DNA of 63,655 bases from Octopus bimaculoides. Taxonomy: Eukaryota. Location: positions 177,850,287 through 177,913,941 of the forward strand of contig NC_068981.1 in the NCBI RefSeq assembly GCF_001194135.2. Reading direction: 5' to 3'. Position 1 is the stretch's first letter. Each line of letters starts with the position of its first letter. The translations under genes and the position numbers were made by a program. Shown here one piece after another: positions 3,814 to 63,655 of this stretch. The notes under the pieces are model-generated. The model made no database searches. It was given only the letters and a program-made list of their open reading frames with translations, and had not been told where the DNA came from.

Positions 3814-4080
3814 CTTGGGCGGTTGTAGTTTGCTGATTCCCTTCTATATGGCATAGTTTGTTGATTAAACGCTGCCTTTTGCATCTGACTGCCAGCAAAA
3901 CTTTGTGGTTGTTGGGTATAATTTGGGGTAGACATAGTTGTGTTAGTGTAGCCAGGTGTGCTGTGAGTAAAAGGTCCACTTTGAGTGGTTTGAGTAACAC
4001 CCCACACTGTAGTCACAACAGAGAGAGACTGAGGAGTTTGGCCACCTTGGTTCCCTGTGGGCCATGCTGCATTAGGATCA
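3814..4080 (-). CDS. ZMIZ1: Internal coding exon of a ZMIZ1/ZMIZ2 (tonalli) ortholog; 267 nt, phase 2-2
   Basis: Acceptor ctttactttttag|T GAT CCT (AG at 4082-4081) and donor CCAAG|gtaatt (GT at 3813-3812). It encodes [37 protein letters not shown]...[17 protein letters not shown] is the hallmark motif of vertebrate ZMIZ1/2 ([21 protein letters not shown], recalled). Confidence 0.93.
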
Positions 4081-18779: not shown

Positions 18780-19030
18780 TGCTTTGACAAACAGGGGCAC
18801 TTACATGTGACTGCTTAAACCTAGTGAGAAATAGCAGCTAAATCCCCCTCAAATCATAAGCTAGAGCTTTTTTTTTTCTTTTTCAAGAACAACACATTGG
18901 ATATGATAGTCCTAAATATACTATGCCTGAAAAGAGGGGGGGGGAGAAAGGAACAAACCAGACTGGTCGTGGTTAAAATGCTTTCCATTATAGATCCACT
19001 TGCCATTAGAGAACTGAGGCTAAATAACAA
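18780..19030 (+). repeat. Dispersed short repeat family C ending in (AAC)n; other copies at about 7650-7830(+), 10930-11170(-), 14270-14400(-), 32210-32350(+), 39870-39990(-), 53470-53670(-), 56560-56620(+)
   Basis: Shared AGAAATAGCAGC(C/T)AAAT.....TCAAATCA and GATGGTCA(T/C)GG(C/T)TGGAATG segments across copies. Confidence 0.65.
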
Positions 19031-19616: not shown

Positions 19617-19752
19617 TTTTGAGGTACAGCAGGCATATTCTTTTGCAACTGATGATGCATGCCTGGGCTTTTAGCCGAATCAGGCGTGCGTGTCTTCTGA
19701 TGTCTTAATAACAATAACCTTCCCAGCTCCTCACACCACATCGAGAGCATAG
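19617..19752 (-). CDS. ZMIZ1: Internal coding exon of the ZMIZ1 ortholog (end of the N-terminal helical domain); 136 nt, phase 1-2
   Basis: Acceptor tgtttcag|CT ATG (AG at 19754-19753) and donor CAAAA|gtaagt (GT at 19616-19615). It reads (A)[44 protein letters not shown], versus human [22 protein letters not shown] (recalled). The terminal AA joins the T of the 4080 exon to give AAT and stays in frame. Not in the supplied ORF track. Confidence 0.95.
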
Positions 19753-19892
19753 CTGAAACATAGACAAGTTACATCCTCAGAAATTTTTAAACATTTTGAG
19801 TGCATGCATACAACAACAATAACAAGAGGTATGTAAAAATGTTACAAGTGAATCTATCTGAACTATGTTCTCTGAAACTAAATACATTTTAC

Positions 19893-22523: not shown

Positions 22524-24325
22524 TTTATCATCATCATTGTTGTCGTTTAACGTCTGCTTTCCATGCTGGCATGGGTTGGGTGGTTTGACTGAGGGTTGGT
22601 GAGCCAGATGGCTGCACCAGGCTCCAATCTGATCTGGCAAAGTTTCTACAGCTGGATGCCCTTCCTAATGCTAACCACTCCAAGAGTGTAGTGGGTGCTT
22701 TTACGTGCCACCAGCATGAGGGCCAGTCAGGCGGTACGGGTATCGACCATGCTCAAATGGTGCTTTTTACATGCCACCTGCACAGGAGCCAGTCTGACAG
22801 CACTGGCAACGACCACCCTTGAATGGTGTTTTTTACGTGCCACCGACACAGGAGCCAGTCAGGTGGTGCTGGCAATGATCACACTCAAATGGTGCCTTTT
22901 ACGTGCCACCGGCACGGGCACCAGTCAGCGGCCCTGGCAACAATCATGCTCGAATGGTGCTTTTAACGTTCCACTGGCACAGGTGCCAATCAAGCAGTAC
23001 TGTCATCGGCCACGACAACAACTTCACTTGCCTCAACAGGTCTTCGCAAGCATAGTTTATTATTCAATGATTGAAGGGTACTCTTAAATGGGCTGGTTAT
23101 GCAGCACTGGCATAAGCTCACTTGGCTTGCTGGGTCTTCTCAATCACAGCATACCTCTAAAGGTCTCAGTCACTTGTCATTGCAACAGTGAGGCCCAATG
23201 TACGAAGGTCGTACTTCACCACCTCATCCCAGGTCTTCCTCGGTCTACCTCTTCCACAAGTTCCCTCAACTGCTAGGGTGCGACACATTTTCACATAGCT
23301 GTCCTCATCCACTCGCAACACATGACCGTACCAGTGCAGTCGTCTCTCTTGCACACCACATCTGATGCTTCTTATGTCCAACTTTTCTCTCAAGGCGCTT
23401 ACACTCTGTTGTGTATGCACACTGACATTACACATCCAGCAGAGCATACTGGCTTCATTCCTTGCAAGCTTACGCATGTCCTCAGCAGTCATCTGCCATG
23501 TAACATGGCTATTCGCACACATCCGTCATACAGTCTACCTTTCATCCTAAGTGAGAGGTCCTTTGTCACCAGCAGAAGTAGGAGCTCTCTGAACTTTGCC
23601 CAGGCTATTCTTATTCTAGCAGCTACACTTTCAGAGCATCCACTTCCATGAATGACTTAGTCACATAGGTAACAGAAGCTATCAACTACTTCTAATTTTC
23701 TCCTGAAATGTGACGGAAGCTGTTCTCTGCACATTTTCAGTGTTTATTGCTCCTGAGCATTTGCAACACACAAAAACTATCTTCCCAGTTAGCCTTACTT
23801 TGATATTGCTGCACCTCTTATGTGTCAATTGCTTACACTGGGTACATCTTATGGAGTTTCTACCTATACCTTTTCTACAGATCGAGCAGGGCAATCTACC
23901 TAAAGGGATTTGTGGTTTGTTTGCCTTCCTACTTATTAAGACTTTGGTTTTTGCTAGGTTGACTCTAAGGCCCTTTGATTCTAATCCTTGCTTCCACACC
24001 TGAAGCTTCTCTTCTAGTTCTGATAGTGACTCAGCTATTAGAGCAAGGTCATCTGCATAGAGAAGCTCCCAGGGGCATCCTGTCTTGAATTCTTCTGTTA
24101 TTGCCTGGAGGACTATGGTGGATAAGAGGGGGCTGAGGACTGATCCTTGGTGGACCTCTACCCCTACCTGGAATTTTTCACAGTTCTCATTGCCAACCCT
24201 CACCTTACTGACAGCATCCCTGTACGTGGCTTGTACAGCTCTCACTAACCATTCTTCTATCCCTAGTTTCCTCATTGACCACCAGATAAGGAATCGGGGA
24301 CCCTGTCAAAGGCTTTCTAAAATTC
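22524..24325 (-). mobile_element. 5'-truncated RTE-clade LINE (RT, PHD-like finger, C-terminus, 3'UTR)
   Basis: LEKAFDRVP near 24320; ORF 23682-24275 has VHQGSVLSPLL and LLYADDLAL; the C-terminus has RRLHWYGHVLR and GRGRPRKTW; the 3' end is CCAACCCATGCCAGCATGGAAAGCAGACGTTAAACG followed by a GAT-type tail. Confidence 0.95.
22692..23020. repeat. ~66-bp tandem array (5 units) in the RTE 3'UTR
   Basis: Units start near 22692, 22759, 22825, 22891 and 22956 with GGTGCTTTTTACGTGCCACC..GCAC.GG.GCCAGTC. Confidence 0.9.
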
Positions 24326-26123
24326 CCTCTTCAGTCCCTTCACAGGTCATATTGAAATATGTGCATGTGAATGTATCTTTAACCTTCTATTATCATCAAC
24401 ACTAAAAAAAAATATTTTATGAAACAGTGAAAGAATGTCAGTGGAATCAGTGGTCATGCTTGTTATAGAGGATAAATCTTTCAACAAAGTAGCAGTTTCT
24501 TTAGGATAGCGACTGCATATTTTGTCTTAAATCTTGAAATAGCAAGGCTGGAAGTTGATTCAACAATGAAATTCAGCCTAAACTGACATCCTGTCTCATT
24601 TCATTGTCTGTATTTGTCTGCTAAACAGAGTTGATCAAAGCCAATGAAACAATAAATTAGTTATGTAAAAGACAAATAAGAGAAATAATGATTTAAAAAT
24701 CAAAGCTAACATGAAAGTAGTATCTCGTATTCAATTAAAGCTGGTAACTCTGAGAAGGACAGTTGTTTTTTTAGGAAACAAATGAATTCTTAGTTGAATC
24801 TTATTATGAAACTAAGTGATCTCCAGGCTTCACAAAGAGAGAAAATAATCATCAGAATCCCCTTGAGAAGGAAACTGATTATCACTACTACTGTCAACAC
24901 TGCCATTTTATAAACTGATGTTATTAAATAGCTGCAATCAGATTTATTTGAGGCATGCTAGTTAATCAAACATTCAAAGAATAACAAACTCAACACAACC
25001 TCTTAAACCAATAGCTCAGCCTTCTACAAATGCTTATTTTACTGACAATAGAGGGATAGAAATGAAAAAAAAAAATCATCAAAACAAACCTCCAAAACAA
25101 AACCATAATCTTTGTAAATTATCCTAAAGTAATTCACTGCTCTTGGTATTCTTTCCTTTTTTTGTTATTGTTTACAACTCTTTCCTAATGCCGTTGGATA
25201 AGCAGATCAACTGATATGGACTAATATTAATAAAGCATAATTGATATCTCTCCAAATATTTTAAAGTGATTCCAAAATTTTTTTTATATAAACAAACCAA
25301 TTTTCAGGACATGAAAAGCATCATTTAACAGGTATCAACAAGATGTAGTGTTATATGATAACCAAACAAATATGTACACATTAACATCAACATTTCTTCA
25401 ACTGACTTAAAATGTCACTAAAAAATAGAGCACTGGTTTCTATCTCTGACTGCAACACTTATCTAGAAAATATGGATTATCCTTAATTTATTTATTTATT
25501 CTTTCTTTCTTCTTTGGGTGGAGTTTTAATATATCATGTTTTTCCCAGGGTTCCCTTTCTCAGTAATATCAGTAGACAGTATTTATCATATTCTTCAAAA
25601 TAGACTTGTTTATATGATAATTGAGGCTAGATAGATATGAAAATTTCTTTTTAACCAACAATATTATATATTTTTTTACTATCTTTTCCAAAAATAAATT
25701 TACTTTTCTTGCTCTGATTATCTTTCTCAAGAAAACATGAGTCATAGTTTCTAACCAGTTATATGTCGAGGAAAAACTTAACTCTTGTTTTCCTGGCACA
25801 TAAGAGCAAGTTTAGTTCTAACAGATGGGAGTGGAGGGGTGCATCTCATGCAATGCCAGACATTTTAATATGGGATTACAGCTTCAGGGCGGGTACTGCA
25901 ACATATTACTTTATCAATTAGTGTAAATGATAGACTTCTATCTCAAAGCATATCGAGACAGTTGCTCTATTTTCGTTTTCCTCTATATAGAACACAGTTT
26001 GGTAATCACTGCAGATGTTGTTCAGACATGCTCAAGCAGACCTATGAAACAAAAACCTTGAGCTTTGACCATCCTGTCTCTTTCTACAGACATAGTAAAC
26101 CTAGGATTACATTTTCTGAAGTA

Positions 26124-31975: not shown

Positions 31976-32376
31976 GGTTAAATATTTATTACTACGCAAT
32001 ATAAACTTGCTATATTAAAATGAAAAGTATATACACAATCTAACTGTAATATAGTTAGAAGCAGACTGAGACAAAAGTGAGTTTTGCCCAGTAACAATGC
32101 AATATGAAGTGTTCATGATCCCATGTGTACATACATACATACCCTGATATATACAAATACATAACCACAAATCTCCACCTTTCTTTTTTTAACTCCTCAA
32201 TCAGGGAGTCATTATGCAGTTGCTCACCATGCTACAAATAGCAGCTAAATCTTCAAATCAAAACCTACCAAATGAGAAAAATAAAGATAGGATAATCTAC
32301 CCCTAGATATCCCTGTAATACTAGCTAGCCATGGCTGGAATGTCTTTCCCTGTAAGTTTATTCAATCACATACCCG

Positions 32377-32753
32377 TCAGAGTGTAAGTATCTTGAGAGA
32401 AAAGCTGAACATTAGAAGCATCAGTTGTGGCGTGCAAGAGAGACGATTGCGCTGGTATGGACATGTGGTGAGAATGGAGGAGGATAGCTGCGTGAAAAAG
32501 TGCCACACCCTAACAGTTGAGGGAACCCGTGGAAGAGGTAGGCCCAGGAAGACCTGGGCTGAGGTGGTGAGGCAAGACCTTCGTACATTGGGCCTCACCG
32601 NNNNNNNNNNAGGAAGGGCATCCAGCTGTAGAAACTCTGCCAAATCAGACTGGAGCCTGGTGTTGCCATCCGGTTTCACCAGTTCTCAGTCAAATCGTCC
32701 AACCCATGCTAGCATGGAAAGCGGACGTTAAACGATGATGATGATGATGATGA
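32377..32753 (+). mobile_element. RTE LINE 3' fragment containing an assembly gap
   Basis: RRLRWYGHVVRMEEDSCVKKC...GRGRPRKTW and the family 3' end with (GAT)n. N10 at 32601-32610 sits where the 66-bp array lies in other copies. Confidence 0.92.
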
Positions 32754-32959
32754 TATATATAAAAATAAAATTTATTAAGCATTTTATTCTTATTGTTATG
32801 AGTTTTTCTTCTTTCAATTTTGTTTCCATTGCTCGCTAAGTGTCTTCCCAACATTCAGCAAGGAAGCAACTCACTGTTATACATTGATAGGCCATTAAAA
32901 TAAACAAGCAGAATAAAGTTATGTAGAAAAAAATTATTTACACATTTGGTAATTATTCT

Positions 32960-38721: not shown

Positions 38722-38823
38722 NNNNNNNNNNNNNNNNNNNNNNNNNNNNNNNNNNNNNNNNNNNNNNNNNNNNNNNNNNNNNNNNNNNNNNNNNNNNNNN
38801 NNNNNNNNNNNNNNNNNNNNNNN

Positions 38824-49404: not shown

Positions 49405-49577
49405 GTACAGGTATGGTTTTGTGGTAAGAAGCTTGCTTCCCCACCACATGGTTCCAGGTTTAGTATCACTGCGCAGCTCCTTGGACAAGTGTCTTCTACT
49501 ATAGCCTTGGGCAACTAAAGCCCTGTGAGCAGATTTCAGAGAGGGAAACTGAAAAAAAGCCCACCATATATGTGTGT
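49405..49577 (+). mobile_element. SINE family A (5' half), abutting the RTE tail
   Basis: TGTGGTAAGAAGCTTGCTTCCCCACCACATGGTTCCAGGTT...GGAAACTGAAAAAAGCCC. Confidence 0.85.
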
Positions 49578-50851
49578 CATCATCATCATCGTCCGTTGAG
49601 GTCTGGAGATCCAGCGGCTGTGCCAGGCTCCAATCTGATTTGGCAGAGTTTCCACAGCTGGATGCCCTTCCTAACACCAACTACTCCAAGAGTGTAGTGG
49701 GTGCTTTTTACATGCCACTAGCACAGGAGCCAGTCACACGGGCCTGGCATCGATCATGTTTGGGTAGTGCTTTTTACATGCCACAGGCACAGGGGCCAGT
49801 CAAGGAGTACTGGCATCAGCCACCTTCGGATTGTTCTGTTTACGTGCCACTAGCATGGGCACCAGTCAAGTGGACCTGGCATTGACCACGTTCAGATGGT
49901 GCTTTTATGTGCCACCAGCACGGGGGATAGTCAGGGGGCACAGCTACGATATTGGTTTTACTTGACGCAACATGTCTTCTCAAGCATATCACATTGCCAG
50001 ACACATCAGGAGTACTCTTAACTGGGCCGGACATGCATGACTGCGATCTCACTTTAGTTGCTAGGTCTTCTCAATCACAGCATATCTCCAAAGGTCTTGG
50101 TCACCTGTCATTGCCTCTGTGAGGCCCATTGTTCTAAGGTCACAGTTAGGGAGTGGCACTTCCTCACACAGCTGTCCTCATCCATACGTGACACATGACC
50201 AGTGCAGTCGTCTCTCTTGCACACCATGATGCTTCTTATGCCCAACTTTTCTCACAGAGCATTTACACTCTGTTGTGTATGCACACTGACATTACACGTC
50301 CAGCAGATCAGACTAGCATCATTCTTTCAAGCCTACACATGTCCTCAGCAGTCATGGCCCATGTTTCACTGCTGTGTAGCATGGCAGTTCACACACATGC
50401 ATCATACAATCTACCTCTCATCCTGAGTGAGAGGCCTTTAGTTGCTAGCAGAGGTAGGAGCTCCCTGAACTTTGCCCAGGCTATTCTTATTCTAGCTGCT
50501 ACACTCTCAGAGCAACCACCCCCACTACAGACTTGGTCACCTAGGTAGCAGAAGCTATCAACTACTGGTTTCTCCCCCTGCTTGTGATGGAATCTATTTT
50601 CTGTACATCTTCAGTGTTTATTGCCCCTGTGCATCTTCCATACACAAAAACTATTTTCCCGGTTAACCTTCCCTTGATATTGCTGCACCTTTTACGTGAC
50701 CATAGTTTACACCAGGTACATCGTATGGAGTTTCTACCCACGCCTTTTCTACAGATCGAGCAGGACCATCTACCTGAAGGGGGTTGTGATTTAACAGCCT
50801 CCCTACTTACTAAAACTTTGGTTTTTGCTAGGTTAATCCTAAGGCCCTTAA
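49578..50851 (-). mobile_element. RTE LINE 3' fragment with PHD-finger region
   Basis: Same family; 4 units of the 66-bp array; Cys/His finger region at about 50635-50770. Confidence 0.92.
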
Positions 50852-52514: not shown

Positions 52515-52673
52515 GCACCCACTACACTCTCAGAGTAGTTGGTGTTAGGAAGGGCATCCAGCTGTAGAAACTCTGCCAAATCAGACTGGAGCCTGGTGTA
52601 GCCACCTGGTCCACCAGTCCTCAGTCAAATCATCCAACCTATGCCAGCATGGAAAGCGGACGTTAAACGATGA

Positions 52674-53460: not shown

Positions 53461-54699
53461 ACAACAACGTCAGCAGGCACAGCAGTTTAGCCCTTGATCA
53501 AGCAGATCTAAAATCAAAAACACTTCAGCTGTGACTATCTCAGTTTTCAGACACCAGTGTATTTCCATTTTCTAATGTGCCTTTCCATTTTTTTCCAACA
53601 GTGGGGGTGTAATTTGAGGGAGAGGAATCAGTTGTAATTTCTAGCAGATCAAGCAACAACAGACTGTTATTACCAGAATTCTCAGTAGTTTATTGCTAGC
53701 TAGATTAGTAATCCATGTATTTCTATTTGCTTTTTAAACTGTTCAAAATTTAGAAACATTTCCCAAACAATATTTTGAAGTGGAAAACCAGTGACAATAA
53801 TTCTCTGGCTCCTAATTAAGTACAAAATTACAAGTCTCCTACCAGACTAACTTGCAACGATAAAATTAAATTTTAAGAACTGTCTCATTTTATTCCACCC
53901 ACATAAGAAACCTCAAAATAAGTTCCTTTATCCTCTTTATAAACAATATATTTTATTACTCCTCCACAAAGTTTTATTTAATAGCTATAGGAAAGAAGAT
54001 TGATGATGTTAGCTAAAGGAGACTTTTAAACCTTTACGGGGATAACCTCTATGGCGCTGCAGCCTGATACAATGCACTCAGTTCATTCTTGTTGGAGACC
54101 TCCCTAGTGCTGGTTGTTACAATAAAAACGCACCCAGCTGTCTTTCTGTCTTTATTATCGCACCAATCATTCTTCAGTAGCTAATGAAAGGATGGGCATC
54201 CAGTATTAAAAAAAAAACTATACCAAAGAAAGAGAGAGAGAAAGAATGAACCGAAGATATGAACTTTGCAAAGTCCCACGTGCATTAAACCCAACTAAGG
54301 GAACAGTAATTTTGAATAAAAACACTGACACAGAGGAGACCAGAGAGGTCTCTATCTAGCACGACTGATATCCATTCTAATGTCAGTGGCACAATAAAAT
54401 GCAATGATAGGAAGGGCATCCAGCAGTAAATAAACAACAACATTACACAACAAAGACAGCTGGATGACAATTGATCGTGGCGAGGCGAGGCACCTTGAAG
54501 CTCCTCTAATCCTATGGCCAGTATGTAAAAACGGATGTAAAATAGTGGTGGTGTTGATTATAAGTTGGATTTGTCGGTTGTATTTAAATAAAATATGTAA
54601 AGAGTACAGGAAAAAAAACATTAATTTTTTTTTAAATATGAGTAAGAACAATCTCTAATGATAACGATACCGGTTTTGAATGTTCACCAAAAGACACCA

Positions 54700-54745
54700 C
54701 GTCAATAATACTCACCTGAAAGAAGAAGAAAAAAAAATTAAATAT
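54700..54745 (-). promoter_or_regulatory. Candidate recursive splice site (3'ss directly followed by 5'ss)
   Basis: Minus strand reads TAATTTTTTTTTCTTCTTCTTTCAG|GTGAGTATT: 20 uninterrupted pyrimidines, then AG (54717-54716), then a consensus donor GTGAGT (54715-54710). Confidence 0.55.
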
Positions 54746-55939
54746 ATTGATAAATACATTGAAACGAATAATAATTTCATCAGTTTTTAAAACATCTAAG
54801 AAATATTTTTCAAAGTCAAACATGTTAAAATATTTTTTTAAAAATATTTCACCAAGTCCCTTGGTTAATTTTGGAGAAAAGTTGAAGATTTATGAAAATT
54901 AAGGGAAATTAAACAAGTCTTTAAAAAATGTGTGCCTTAAATAAATAAATAAATAAATACATAAAAGCTGACATTTTAAAGTATGTCTGAATACAATGTT
55001 ACAAATATATCATTACTGAAGTAGAGCATTCACAGAATAAATGCAGTACTTCTACACATACGAGTATATAGTTTATACCCATCCACCCACACAAAACCTT
55101 GTAATAGGTTAATTTCGATTTTAAATCTCAGGTTAATCCACTCTTAAAACATTTTACTTCAATATCTTCGAAACGAAAAATAACCAAACACGATAACCTT
55201 TCTTCACCAGCCGAAATATATATATTTCTGTACTCTTCACACTTGTTTATTTATAACAAGATAGCCACATGAAGGAGAAAATCAAGTCGCAATCTCGGTC
55301 AAATCAACCCATGCTTGTTCCATACTCAATCAGACCTCCATGCAAAACAATTATCCTCTTCCACGCTACAAACTGGAGTAGTCAAAGACAATTAACAAAT
55401 TGGTTCTTTCCTCCGCTTCAAATGACTAGAAAGTTACAAAGCTAATCTGTAATGAAACAATGGAAGCAAAAATGCCTAATCTAACTCGAAGTACAATTTC
55501 TGTCACGGATCTTTCACTTTTCTATCTAATACTCGATTATTTTTTGCAACTCAAAACAGTCAACAAAATCTCTAAACACCTATAATATTTTTTAATTAAT
55601 TAATAATTTACACATGTATTTGCTGCAACTAGCAGATAAAACATCGTCTACCTCTGTGTTCATAGTTACCATGAATACAGTGAGTATGACAACATAATTC
55701 AACTTCAATGCTGTTAGTTGATCTGTATCTCGTCAGCTTTGTTGTCACTTCAGTGAAATAGCAGTTCAATAATAGATTGCATAGGAAAAGTAAATAAAAA
55801 AAAATCTCTAACACAGTAACCTGACTATTCTCTCTCTCTCACTGTTTAAGATGTGAATTGTCTCAAGCAGTAATAATGTGAAATATGTATTGAATTACGA
55901 TGCCAACATTGACTTAGCTATATGGTCGTACTATACACA

Positions 55940-56440
55940 CCAATAATATTGAGTTAGACAGGGAGACAAGACACACAAGTAGTACAGAGTTAGTAAGGCA
56001 GACACCAGTACTGTAGAGTTAGGAGACAGACACATACCAGAAATATAGTTAAACGGTAGACAGACATACGCATATGATACAGTATTAATCTAAGAGACAC
56101 ATACATCAATGATATAGTTAGATGGCAAACAGACATACACTAGGTGTGTATTAGACATTCCAGTGGTACGCAACTAGGTAATACTCAGATACACACCAGC
56201 ACCAGTGTTTTGAAATTAAAAAGCACTCAAACATACAACAGCAGTGTGTACCGCTAGACGGTACTCAGACACATTGGTAATGTATTGCTGGTTAGTACTC
56301 AGATAAACACTAATAGTTAACAAGACTGTTGGTACTCAGTTACTTAGCAGTGAGTACACGGTTGATACTCAGATGTACAGTAGTAGAAGTACAGCTAAGT
56401 GATACTCGATGATACAGCAGTGGTAGACAGCTACCGTGAC
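55940..56440. repeat. Highly diverged ~33-42-bp minisatellite (about 13-14 units)
   Basis: (G/A)TACTCAG-like cores near 56182, 56224, 56262, 56296, 56333, 56366 and 56402; AGACAGACAC-like cores near 55966, 55998, 56023, 56058, 56093 and 56126. Confidence 0.7.
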
Positions 56441-57036
56441 ATACATTACACTCGTAAATAGCACCGAGGGAATCTCTGTGGTCACTAAAGCTGCCAGAAA
56501 TAACAGTTACATATTCCCCCCATTCCCATGTCATAAAAAAGTTTGAATTGGATTAAGATACCCTTAAAAGACAAGATGGTCACGGTTAGAATGCCACTGA
56601 TTATATAGATCTGCTGGATTACAGTTTGCTTCTCAACAACAGAGAGATACACTCACGGTAAACAGCTACATGGAATCCAAAGCATTTATTTACCGTGTAC
56701 AACTAGATGGTACCCAAATACGTTCTGTGTACTGCGATAAGACAAAATCAGCAGTGATAGAGCGATAAACTTAAATGTTGAGGAAATGACCTGGTTGTCT
56801 TCACCGCTTTCACCATTCTAGACTTTCTCTATTTAGGAAATATCTTACATACTTGTCTCCCTTGAGAGATTACGAAAAATTATCCTTTGTATTATTTTTT
56901 TCCTACCGACATTTCCACAACCGCCTCACCTGACTCAAATATTCAGGGAGGAAGTGCCTGTGCATTCGATCGACCAGCTAGATATAACAGACAAATTTCT
57001 GTCGAATTACATTTCACAGTTTAGGAAAAAAGGGGA

Positions 57037-57083
<47 letters not shown>

Positions 57084-57150
57084 ATATATTTTGTTCTTTT
57101 ACGTATTTCAGTGTAAAGGCTATGGCCACGCTGATACACACATATATATA

Positions 57151-57488
57151 CAGGCGTGGCTGTGTGGGAAGAAGTTTGCTTCTCAACTACATAGTTCCGG
57201 GTTCAGTCTCATTGCGTGGTACCTTGAACAAGAATCTACAATGCTCTAGGGCCGACCAAAGCCTTGTGGGTAGATTTAGAAGACGGGAACTGAAAGGAAC
57301 CCGCCGCGTATGTATATGTGAGTGCTTGTTTGTCTTCCACCTACCCACTGCTTGACAACCGGTATTGGTTTGTTTAAGGCAAAAGAATAAGAATTCTTTT
57401 AAAGAGAAAAGTATTTGGTTCCGTTTGTTCGACTAAACTTTTCTGTGCTCAAACATGGCCGCATCCAATGAGTGAAACAAATAAAAGA
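57151..57488 (+). mobile_element. SINE family A
   Basis: CAGGCGTGGCTGTGTGG...GGTTCAGTCTC...GGGCCGACCAAAGCCTTGTG...CATGGCCGCA. Confidence 0.85.
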
Positions 57489-57625
57489 CACATATAACTA
57501 GACAGTTTGATAAGACCCGACTTTGGCTGGAATTAAACTATATTTGGGTATTTACTAATTTTTTTTTAAATAATTAAAAGTGCCTTTGAAAATCAAAATA
57601 TATTAACACATAAAACTGATTACCT

Positions 57626-57992
57626 CTTTTATTTTTTACTTGGTCCAATTATGCAGGGGTACTACCTTGAAAAGTTTAGTTGTACAAATCAATTCTAGTA
57701 CTAATTTTTTAAGGCCGGTACTTGTTCTCTTGGTCTCTTTTACTGAACTGCTAAGTTACGTGGATGTAATCAAACCAACATCGATTGCCAACCGTTGGAG
57801 GGGGGTGTCAAACACAAAGATACACACACATGTATATACAAGTTTCTTTCAGTTTTTTGTTTACCAAATCCACTCACAAGGCTTTAGTCAGCCTGGTGCT
57901 ATTAGTAGAAGACAACTGATCAGGGTGCTGTACAGTAGGATCGAACCCACGGTCACCTGGTTGGGAAGTAAGCTTCATAACCACATAACATG
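57626..57992 (-). mobile_element. SINE family A
   Basis: Reverse-complement copy, tail-to-tail with 57151-57488. Confidence 0.8.
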
Positions 57993-58113
57993 TTTAATCA
58001 AGAATCTATGAATAAAGTATTTCTTTGCGTGATTTTTAATAATGAAAGACAATCTGTAGGTTTCAAATAAGCTCAGATGTTTTCTAGTGAAACAGGTTTA
58101 CATTGACTGATAT

Positions 58114-58326
58114 TGGTTTCAAATTTCAGCACATGGCCAGCAATTTCGGGGGACAGGCTAAGTCAATTACATCAACCCCAGTGCTCAACTGGTAATTACT
58201 CTATCAACCTCAAAAGAATGAAAGGTAAAGTTGACCTTTGGAGGAATTGGAACTCAGAACGTAAGGAAGGACAGATGAAATGCCGCTAAGCATTTTGCCC
58301 AGCATGCCAACAATTCTGCCAGCTCA
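58114..58326 (-). mobile_element. SINE family B
   Basis: Clear reverse-complement copy. Confidence 0.85.
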
Positions 58327-58714: not shown

Positions 58715-58920
58715 GCAGCAAGCTAGCAGAAAAGTTAGCACACTGGACAAACTACTTAGTTGCATTTCATCCATCTTTACATTCTAAGTTCAACTTTGCC
58801 TTTCATCCTTTCAGGGTTTGATGAAGTAAGTACCAGTTGAACGTTGGAGTCAATGTAATTGACTAAGTCCCCTCCCATAAGATTTCAGGTAGCCTTGTTG
58901 TGTCTATAGTAGAAAGGATT
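58715..58920 (+). mobile_element. SINE family B
   Basis: CTTTGCCTTTCATCCTTTCAGGG...GTAAGTACCAGTTGAACGTTGGAGTCAATGTAAT. Confidence 0.8.
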
Positions 58921-60405
58921 TAATGTGCTGTTTCAGACAGAATTTTACAATCAGTTAAAGGTTTGAAATACAGTGCAGTAGAAAATTAGTTAGACAAAAA
59001 GACAAAACAACTTAATTGACACAAAATGGTATTCCAATGAGTCATAGACATGAATATATAACTAAGAAAATTTTTAATAAAAAAAAAAAGAACAAAACAA
59101 GAGTCCTCCATGTTAGTCCTTGACTAACCAGCAATCTTAATCTGATAATAGAAAAATATCTCAAACTGCAAATGGATATTTAATCATAGATCCATGGGGG
59201 GGGGGGATAGTTTTAAACTACTTAATGTGTCAAAAAGCATCTCTTATAAGTGTAAACAGTACCTCACATATATAAAGAAATTTAATATCAATTTGTTCAT
59301 TTAACATGCTTATTTAAAGTTCAAGTGCTCTATTAAAAAATACAATGAAAGAAATTAATGAATTTTTAACAACTTATCAATTAATTTTGCCTTTTGTTTT
59401 GTTTTAAGTTTCGTTTGAAATATTTGTTAATGAGATTAAAACCAAATCATTTAAAAGTTCAAAGAATAAAAAAATATGTTAGATGTCTTAAACAATAAAT
59501 TTAAACTGTGAAACATAATNNNNNNNNNNNNNNNNNNNNNNNNNNNNNNNNNNNNNNNNNNNNNNNNNNNNNNNAGCAGTGCAGTGAACCATTTACAAGA
59601 TGCAAAGCTACATCTGATTTCTACAAAATTATGAAAGTGATTTACAAAAGTAGAACTGGTGGAATTTATAACATTAATATAGACCAGGAGTCAGCGAACT
59701 GGGGTAAATTACCCCAAGTGAGGTAATAATTAAATTCTTGAGGGTAACGAGGGCTCATTAGACATAAGTAAAATTACGTTACAACCGAAATTTTTCTTCT
59801 GGCATGAGGAGGCAGTCAAAAAGTTGCTATCCTTGCAAACAAGGATTTTCTACACTAACACACACACACACACACACACAAAAAAAAGCAGAGTAATCGA
59901 TTGTATCCCAAAGACTATGCAAATTGCTCTGGCATCAAAATGTCCCAATTTTGATATAATTGTAACCAAAATGAAAAAACACCTGAAGTGAAAAAGTTTC
60001 CAGAAAAATCCTTTTGTTTCATAATGAGGATATTAATTTATTTTTATCGCATTTGTTTTATTCTCTATATATTTATGATTGCATTCTCCAGATAAATAGA
60101 TTCAATAAACCTTTCGAATTCTAAGAATCTATTATTTTCTTCCTTTCAAATCAAGGGGGTAATGTCAGTGTAATTAAATATATTTTGTGGTAATCGGTTA
60201 AAAAGTTCCCCAATTCCTGATATAGACTGTAAGTTTGCATATATTTTTTTTTTGTCATTAGACTGTGGGAATGAAGGGGCAATTCCATGAGGGGGAGGAG
60301 AGAGATGCTTGTCCAAAATGCCATGCAATGGGATCTTTTTCATGACAAAGTCTGCTCTAAACCACTACAAAAAACAAGTCAAACATTCTCAATCTTAATC
60401 CTTAA

Positions 60406-63120: not shown

Positions 63121-63655
63121 TCTATATATNNNNNNNNNNNNNNNNNNNNNNNNNNNNNNNNNNNNNNNNNNNNNNNNNNNNNNNATATATATAAGTTAAA
63201 CTTAGAATAATAATGTACTGATTTCTTCACTATCCTTGTCGATTCTTACTAACCTAAAAATAAGTTTCTATCAGCACCAACATGACCACAACCATAGTTA
63301 TCCAAAACATGAAGCAGATCCATTTTCATTATTATTGTTAGGTGTGTATCATTTGATTTTGGTTCTAGTAATGCCAACTGTTATGTGGAGCATCATGTAT
63401 TAATATAACCAGTTCATACTACAAAGTGATCTTCACCAGTAGAGGCACCATCTGAAAGCATGTAGCAAGTAAAAAAAAAAAAAAAAAAAAAAAAACCCCA
63501 GAGAACTAAGTAGAAACTGTAAAACAAGCAGTAGTAAAAAGAGACAGGCAAGGAAAAGAAGCTAACGAGAAAGGGAGTATAATGGAAAACTGATCTTGAT
63601 TATGGAAGAACATAACATACAGATGAATTGAAAAGTTAGAGATCAATAAAAAGGA

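Follow-up and report, generated by a model that had tools for sequence, protein, structure and literature searches.

We analysed a window of 63,655 nt from the genome of Octopus bimaculoides, whose minus strand carries part of a gene of the ZMIZ family. Two coding exons of this gene lie at the low-coordinate end of the window (Table 1), and both match ZMIZ1-family proteins, in agreement with the assignment proposed in an earlier sequence-only reading of the same DNA. The identity of the gene is based on BLAST and HMMER matches; a Pfam scan did not recognise the short ZMIZ exon fragment. Searches by tblastn, for which human ZMIZ1 and the N-terminal ZMIZ protein P0021 of Lottia served as queries, located no N-terminal exon (residues 1-92) in 19753-63655. 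The intron that precedes the exon starting at 19752 must therefore leave the window and measures 43.9 kb or more. The candidate site described here falls within this intron, and no ZMIZ coding exon separates it from the acceptor at 19752, so the earlier placement in a giant intron stands. Its distance from that acceptor, previously given as about 35 kb, is 34,963 nt, a figure that is approximate because two of the four assembly gaps in the window (32601-32610 and 38722-38823) lie between the site and the exon. On the other side, the site is at least 8.9 kb from the 5' end of the host intron. It is thus located deep in a long intron and away from coding exons, in a region where non-coding exons are possible.

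The window also contains several families of repeats. LINE fragments recur in three intervals, with reverse-transcriptase and PHD-like finger sequences and a conserved C-terminal tail (...RLRWYGHV...GRGRPRKTW...), and have 1,966 relatives in the protein collection. For the reverse-transcriptase/PHD fragment at 23682-24275, the best named matches are from Octopus vulgaris (72%) and O. bimaculoides (68-70%). Copies of short interspersed repeats are found in both orientations and include a B-box-like GGTTCGATCC at about 57945, while ARAGORN reported no tRNA; that these copies represent a tRNA-derived SINE is only a guess. A motif containing GGAAGGGCATCCAGC occurs in three degenerate copies and is shared with LINE or SINE tails. 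These copies are old repeat relics, and they begin about 280 nt downstream of the candidate site in the sense of the gene.

Table 1. Features of the window, with coordinates counted from its first nucleotide
Feature	Coordinates	Strand	Details
Subsequent ZMIZ coding exon	3814-4080	-	DPNAAWPTGNQGG...SLSVVTTVWGV...
ZMIZ coding exon, next after the candidate site	19617-19752	-	phase-1 acceptor tgtttcag|C; donor AAA|GTAAGT
GTGAGT, intronic part of the 5' splice site to be regenerated	54710-54715	-	GT at 54715-54714
AG, candidate recursive 3' splice site	54716-54717	-	read from sequence
Polypyrimidine tract, T9CTTCTTCTTTC	54718-54737	-	20/20 Y (-22 to -3); TT at -5/-6
Branch-point-like TTAAT (yUnAy)	54737-54741	-	predicted branch A 54738, at -23 from the 3' splice site
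Candidate cryptic RS-exon, 45 nt	54671-54715	-	before weak donor CCG|GTATCG (GT at 54670)
CpG-retaining block	54030-57520		about 3.5 kb; observed/expected CpG about 0.6, against about 0.2 elsewhere
Second-best sense donor, CAG|GTGAGG	56924-56932	-	GT at 56929-56928; 13.5 bits
LINE fragments	22527-24405, 32369-32767, 49574-50849	both
Short interspersed-repeat copies	57150-57400, 57651-57989, 58108-58326, 58721-58890	both
GGAAGGGCATCCAGC-containing motif copies	52534-52570, 54176-54212, 54396-54432
Assembly gaps (runs of N)	32601-32610, 38722-38823, 59520-59574, 63130-63184

A fused acceptor and donor signal in the ZMIZ intron

On the minus strand, the strand of the gene, the sequence around the candidate site is ...TCAATATATTTAAT TTTTTTTT CTTCTTCTTTC AG|GTGAGT ATTATTGACG, and from 54715 onward it reads GTGAGTATTATTGACG. 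Its core, TTAAT-T8-CTTCTTCTTTC-AG|GTGAGT, is a near-perfect fusion of an acceptor signal with a donor signal. The elements reported in the sequence-only reading, namely TAAT-T8, a 20-nt pure pyrimidine tract and AG|GTGAGT, were all recovered exactly at their positions when this strand was read again. The predicted branch A at -23 fits both the consensus and the range observed in flies, a motif match that is weak evidence in DNA so rich in A and T. Treated as the start of an ordinary exon, the sequence after the junction gives VSIIDVVSFGEHSKPVSLSLEIVLTHI followed by a stop in frame 0, again as reported. The description of the surroundings as unique, non-repeat sequence holds within the window, where the 2.5 kb around the site is single-copy and has no protein-level homologue.

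We compared the strength of the motif with that of other sites in the window using a generic acceptor-plus-donor matrix, whose use is limited to ranking. On this matrix the candidate site scores 25.6 bits, ahead of 16.7 and 12.5 bits for the next-best site on each strand. It is also the sole AGGT in the window that combines at least 16 pyrimidines in 20 positions with GTRAG, which bears out the claim that it is the strongest AG|GT juxtaposition on either strand. Both halves contribute to the score. The acceptor half reaches 16.2 bits, compared to 4.9 and 8.0 bits for two real ZMIZ exon acceptors, and the 9-mer CAG|GTGAGT, at 13.7 bits, is the top donor of the window on the gene strand. A second matrix was built from 36 experimentally supported recursive sites of the fly (Pai et al. 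2018, S1 Table). With this matrix the candidate site scores 31.7 bits and the next-best AGGT of the window 8.9 bits. The octopus site outscores 34 of the 36 fly sites, whose leave-one-out scores range from 16.2 to 35.0 bits, and would rank in their top tenth. At a threshold of 16 bits on the fly matrix, this window contains one sense site and no antisense site.

A motif of this strength is rarely produced by chance in DNA of similar composition. A pattern search gave one match in the window and none in 100 shuffles. Scored with the generic matrix, 12 Mb of Markov sequence simulated at each of the orders 1, 3 and 5 yielded no site of 24 bits or more, and neither did composition-matched simulations of order 3 and order 5 (40 Mb each) with the fly matrix. 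Simulated sites of at least 16.2 bits on the fly matrix appeared at 0.13-0.28 per 100 kb, a density resembling the figure of about 0.1 per 100 kb that Shepard et al. 2009 described as antisense background. A semi-empirical estimate, obtained by multiplying the observed occurrence of equally strong acceptors by that of equally strong donors, put the coincidence to be expected in one window at about 5e-4, and overall the expectation for an equally good chance site is 1e-4 to 5e-4. The motif is statistically exceptional on these per-window figures, to which a look-elsewhere effect applies. Extrapolating the simulations to a genome of about 3 Gb suggests that about 5-25 equally good sites, a handful to a few dozen, would arise by chance.

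In flies and vertebrates, recursive sites are followed by a short cryptic RS-exon, usually out of frame, whose donor loses to the regenerated site. The candidate RS-exon in the octopus intron is 45 nt long, with alternative ends at +18, +28 and +222. The donors at +18, +28 and +45 score 3.6-4.4 bits and the donor at +222 scores 6.3 bits, all below the 13.7 bits of the donor that would be regenerated. In the phase of the gene (phase 1), the exon reads X-E-Y-Y-stop, with translation ending after the fourth codon. Including the cryptic exon would, as with typical RS-exons, be out of frame and meet this early stop. Donors just as good are found after 32% of random positions, so the RS-exon donors are uninformative, and we rejected them as support for recursion.

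The CpG-retaining block around the site

A block that has retained CpG dinucleotides contains the candidate site, close to its downstream edge in gene sense. Within the block the observed/expected ratio reaches 0.79, compared to a window median of 0.17, and G+C content is ordinary (0.30-0.39). Over 3.25 kb, 58 CpG were counted (a Poisson p of about 5e-13, with block boundaries set after the data had been viewed). In O. bimaculoides, gene bodies are methylated, and promoters and transposons are unmethylated. The depletion of CpG across the window fits the gene-body methylation described for octopus. One interpretation of the block is that it may be an internal promoter or regulatory island. Equally, it may be a younger, unmethylated insertion derived from repeats. 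It contains 36-37-nt tandem repeats and fragments of interspersed repeats; we found no terminal inverted or direct repeats bounding it, no Rfam family, and no tRNA-like gene in the repeats near the site.

The second-best sense donor of the window is also in the block, 2.2 kb upstream of the candidate site, and the AG context before it is weak. This donor, at 56929, could belong to an alternative first exon within the block. The sequence-only reading had raised the idea that the site serves as a switch point shared by different promoters. This idea is speculative, and the hint in its favour comes from the CpG-retaining block together with the second strong sense donor; a first-exon donor or a young unmethylated insertion would suit the block equally well. 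As a separate feature of the block, a degenerate tandem array with units of 29-37 nt (...CTGAGTA[CT]CAAC.../...GTCTGTCT...) occupies 55935-56450.

Relation to known recursive sites

Experiments have demonstrated recursive splicing in flies and in vertebrates, and an excess of motifs points to it in a few other invertebrates. Our literature searches found no description of recursive splicing in any mollusc and no link between ZMIZ1 and recursive splicing. The earlier statement that the process is uncharacterised in cephalopods agrees with this, as the literature searched pairs the two terms only in passing and leaves the question unaddressed.

Exact protein look-ups with the two ORFs that span or flank the site, and with two other ORFs of the window, gave no match, and five concatenated ORFs from within 400 nt of the site had no match at E<=10 among 5.8 billion proteins. 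An exact 26-mer across the site had 0 matches in metagenome contigs. The nearest relative found (P0001, in Logan runs ERR12374250 and others) was reached through exon 3, in which nucleotide identity is 81%; its contigs are at most 3.6 kb long and contain exon 3 only, with no alignable intron. Two invertebrate ZMIZ loci (L004 and L005), covered over exon 3 and 10 kb to either side, short of exon 2 and of the orthologous intron, contained no ratchet-like motif of 16 bits or more. We take tna (FBgn0026160) to be the fly orthologue of ZMIZ. Looked up under this identifier, tna is absent from the site table of Pai et al., so that the fly orthologue is not among the listed recursive genes, a point against the recursive reading.

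One close counterpart is formed by the ratchet points of Drosophila, zero-nucleotide recursive splice sites known from Ubx, kuz, luna and other genes (Hatton 1998, Burnette 2005, Duff 2015, Pai 2018, Joseph 2018). Duff et al. described these as AG|GT sites with an unusually prominent pyrimidine tract and with TT at -5/-6 in 99.5% of cases, with branch points at -36 to -21, in host introns of 11-133 kb that are divided into segments of 2.6-64 kb. The octopus site shares with them the sense-strand consensus (Y)n-NCAG|GTRAGT, the prominent tract and the TT at -5/-6. Its predicted branch A is within the fly range, about 20-35 nt upstream, and it is found in an intron longer than 11 kb, in the gene of a developmental regulator, with segments whose sizes are in the range of the fly. 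The two differ in that the octopus site is known from sequence alone, and in that its host is a mollusc with a large, repeat-rich, CpG-methylated genome.

With the recursive sites of vertebrates, the octopus site has in common the AGGT core, a strong tract, a GTRAGT complementary to U1 and a long intron. The vertebrate sites with RS-exons include those in CADM2, ROBO2, NTM and LSAMP (Sibley 2015; PMC8797253). As in vertebrates, a cryptic exon after the site would contain a premature stop, which fits the model of competition, also called the "binary switch" model. The resemblance is incomplete. Vertebrate sites are mostly found in brain-specific genes longer than 294 kb, in a first or second intron that exceeds 51 kb (PMC8797253), whereas the octopus intron follows N-terminal coding exons, and the octopus site has no convincing RS-exon donor. 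Other elements in which a 3' splice site directly abuts a 5' splice site within an intron are the zero-length exon of rat alpha-tropomyosin and the poison or decoy pseudo-exons. As with those pseudo-exons, inclusion of the sequence downstream of the octopus site would trigger nonsense-mediated decay. However, the alpha-tropomyosin and decoy elements control local alternative splicing and do not subdivide very long introns.

Shepard et al. 2009 found a 4- to 22-fold excess of the motif on the sense strand of long introns in every invertebrate tested, none of which was a mollusc, compared to a sense/antisense ratio of 1.0-1.5 in vertebrates, with a chance density of about 0.1 per 100 kb. Recursive splicing is rare in vertebrates, with 20 sites in mouse cortex (PMC8797253). 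The prior for recursion at the octopus site depends on whether cephalopods resemble other invertebrates or vertebrates in this respect, and cephalopod genomes are vertebrate-like in being large and repeat-rich, which counts against recursion.

Readings of the site

We propose that the motif is a recursive splice site, or ratchet point, on the minus strand of a ZMIZ intron of at least 44 kb, and we give this reading a probability of about 0.5. The features that can be read from the sequence all fit a ratchet point, and the strength of the motif lends partial support to the removal of the intron in steps. The upstream exon lies outside the window, and its 5' splice site would pair co-transcriptionally with the strong 3' splice site at 54716. 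That 3' site is made up of the AG, the pyrimidine tract of 20 nt and a predicted branch A near 54738. A first lariat would then carry off the 8.9 kb or more of intron upstream of the site. Ligation would set the upstream exon against GTGAGT (54715-54710), re-forming a strong 5' splice site that would pair with the acceptor at 19753/19752 and allow the remaining 34,963 nt to be removed. Under this scheme the mRNA would keep nothing of the recursive site and the reading phase would be unchanged. Judging from flies and vertebrates, the site would probably first be recognised via a short cryptic RS-exon, for which the 45-nt exon with its weak downstream donor is the candidate; if it were kept, the transcript would acquire the stop after four codons.

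Recursion accounts for the tract and the donor together, while each reading that assigns the motif a single function has to accept a coincidence. A second possibility, which the sequence-only reading had already named, is a conventional exon boundary. The site could be the donor of a first exon, unannotated and either non-coding or alternative, that is transcribed from an internal promoter in the CpG-retaining block, or it could be the acceptor of a cassette or poison exon and undergo no second splicing. We regard this as doubtful. As a donor only, the site would leave the uninterrupted 20-nt pyrimidine tract and its AG as a coincidence that, judging from run lengths, affects about 0.1% of positions, and as an acceptor only it would leave the perfect GTGAGT, at about 5e-4. 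Some observations do favour an exon boundary. The site is within a 3.5-kb block with threefold the CpG density of the remaining gene body, which could mark an internal transcription start given that O. bimaculoides promoters are unmethylated, and this block holds both of the top sense donors of the window, at 54715 and at 56929. There is also precedent in mouse, where 84 AGGT sites in introns had junction reads, and 46 of them were unannotated exons, compared to 19 recursive sites (PMC8797253). Against an exon boundary, the case for a promoter comes solely from CpG retention, and the would-be exon sequence is extremely rich in A and T, and in T above all. An exon starting at 54715 would run into the stop in the gene's phase, and the sole decent donor for it is 222 nt downstream. 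Separately, we rejected a normal internal exon ending at 54716, as no acceptor of 5 bits or more is present within 300 nt upstream.

Somewhat less doubtful, though still unlikely in our estimation, is an unselected motif that the spliceosome uses little or not at all, for example through repression or RNA structure. Such a motif could have arisen by chance beside a T-rich, (TTC)n-like tract, or it could have been carried in by a transposon or another young insertion. Long tracts of this kind are common in the window, with 34 pyrimidine runs of at least 16 nt, and the chance sites extrapolated to the whole genome, 5-25 in about 3 Gb, mean that sites of this quality are expected somewhere. The retention of CpG likewise resembles younger or unmethylated transposon sequence, cephalopod transposons having been reported as unmethylated, and the tandem repeats and interspersed-repeat fragments inside the block would fit such an origin. 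However, the expectation for this window is just 1e-4 to 5e-4, and the site is on the sense strand. The 2.5 kb around it has no second copy in the window, and the block lacks bounding terminal repeats. Translations from near the site match none of the 5.8 billion proteins, compared to the 1,966 relatives of the LINE fragment in the same window. In addition, splicing would probably not pass over a 3' splice site of 16.2 bits in an intron that is transcribed, when the real acceptors of the gene have 4.9 and 8.0. A transposon origin in particular was considered and set aside at the scope of the window, which contains no further copy, no bounding repeats, no Rfam family and no tRNA-like gene nearby.

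We can also imagine a more elaborate form of recursive splicing at this locus, which we consider improbable when all its parts are taken jointly. Cephalopods would rely on fly-type zero-nucleotide ratchet points to take out very long introns, and the one described here would be embedded in an island of the ZMIZ gene that is unmethylated in the germline. The island would act as a hub, where a single recursive site would receive transcripts from the distal promoter as well as transcripts beginning with an internal first exon, whose donor is the one at 56929. This site would either erase itself or commit the transcript to the stop-containing cryptic exon. If the CpG-retaining block is an internal promoter, the locus would become a test case for the "binary switch" model, in which promoter choice is coupled to inclusion of the RS-exon.

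Whether reliance on ratchet points follows ancestry or genome architecture is a question to which a single motif gives no answer. Coleoids combine vertebrate-sized, repeat-rich introns with an invertebrate lineage and thus bear on this question. The ZMIZ intron provides a concrete and cheap test case, and the scoring recipe used here can be run genome-wide. If the recursive reading is true, the site would be a recursive splice site in an unstudied phylum, a useful test locus and not a surprise.

One further splice signal of the gene deserves mention. The strongest acceptor of the window, CTTTCTCCCCCCCCCTCTTTTCAG|G (17.8 bits), is located 690 nt downstream of the exon at 19752-19617, within 18804-18950 on the minus strand, and is followed 122 nt later by a good donor, CAT|GTAAGT. 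An exon in this interval would shift the frame and introduce an in-frame stop, making it a candidate poison exon.
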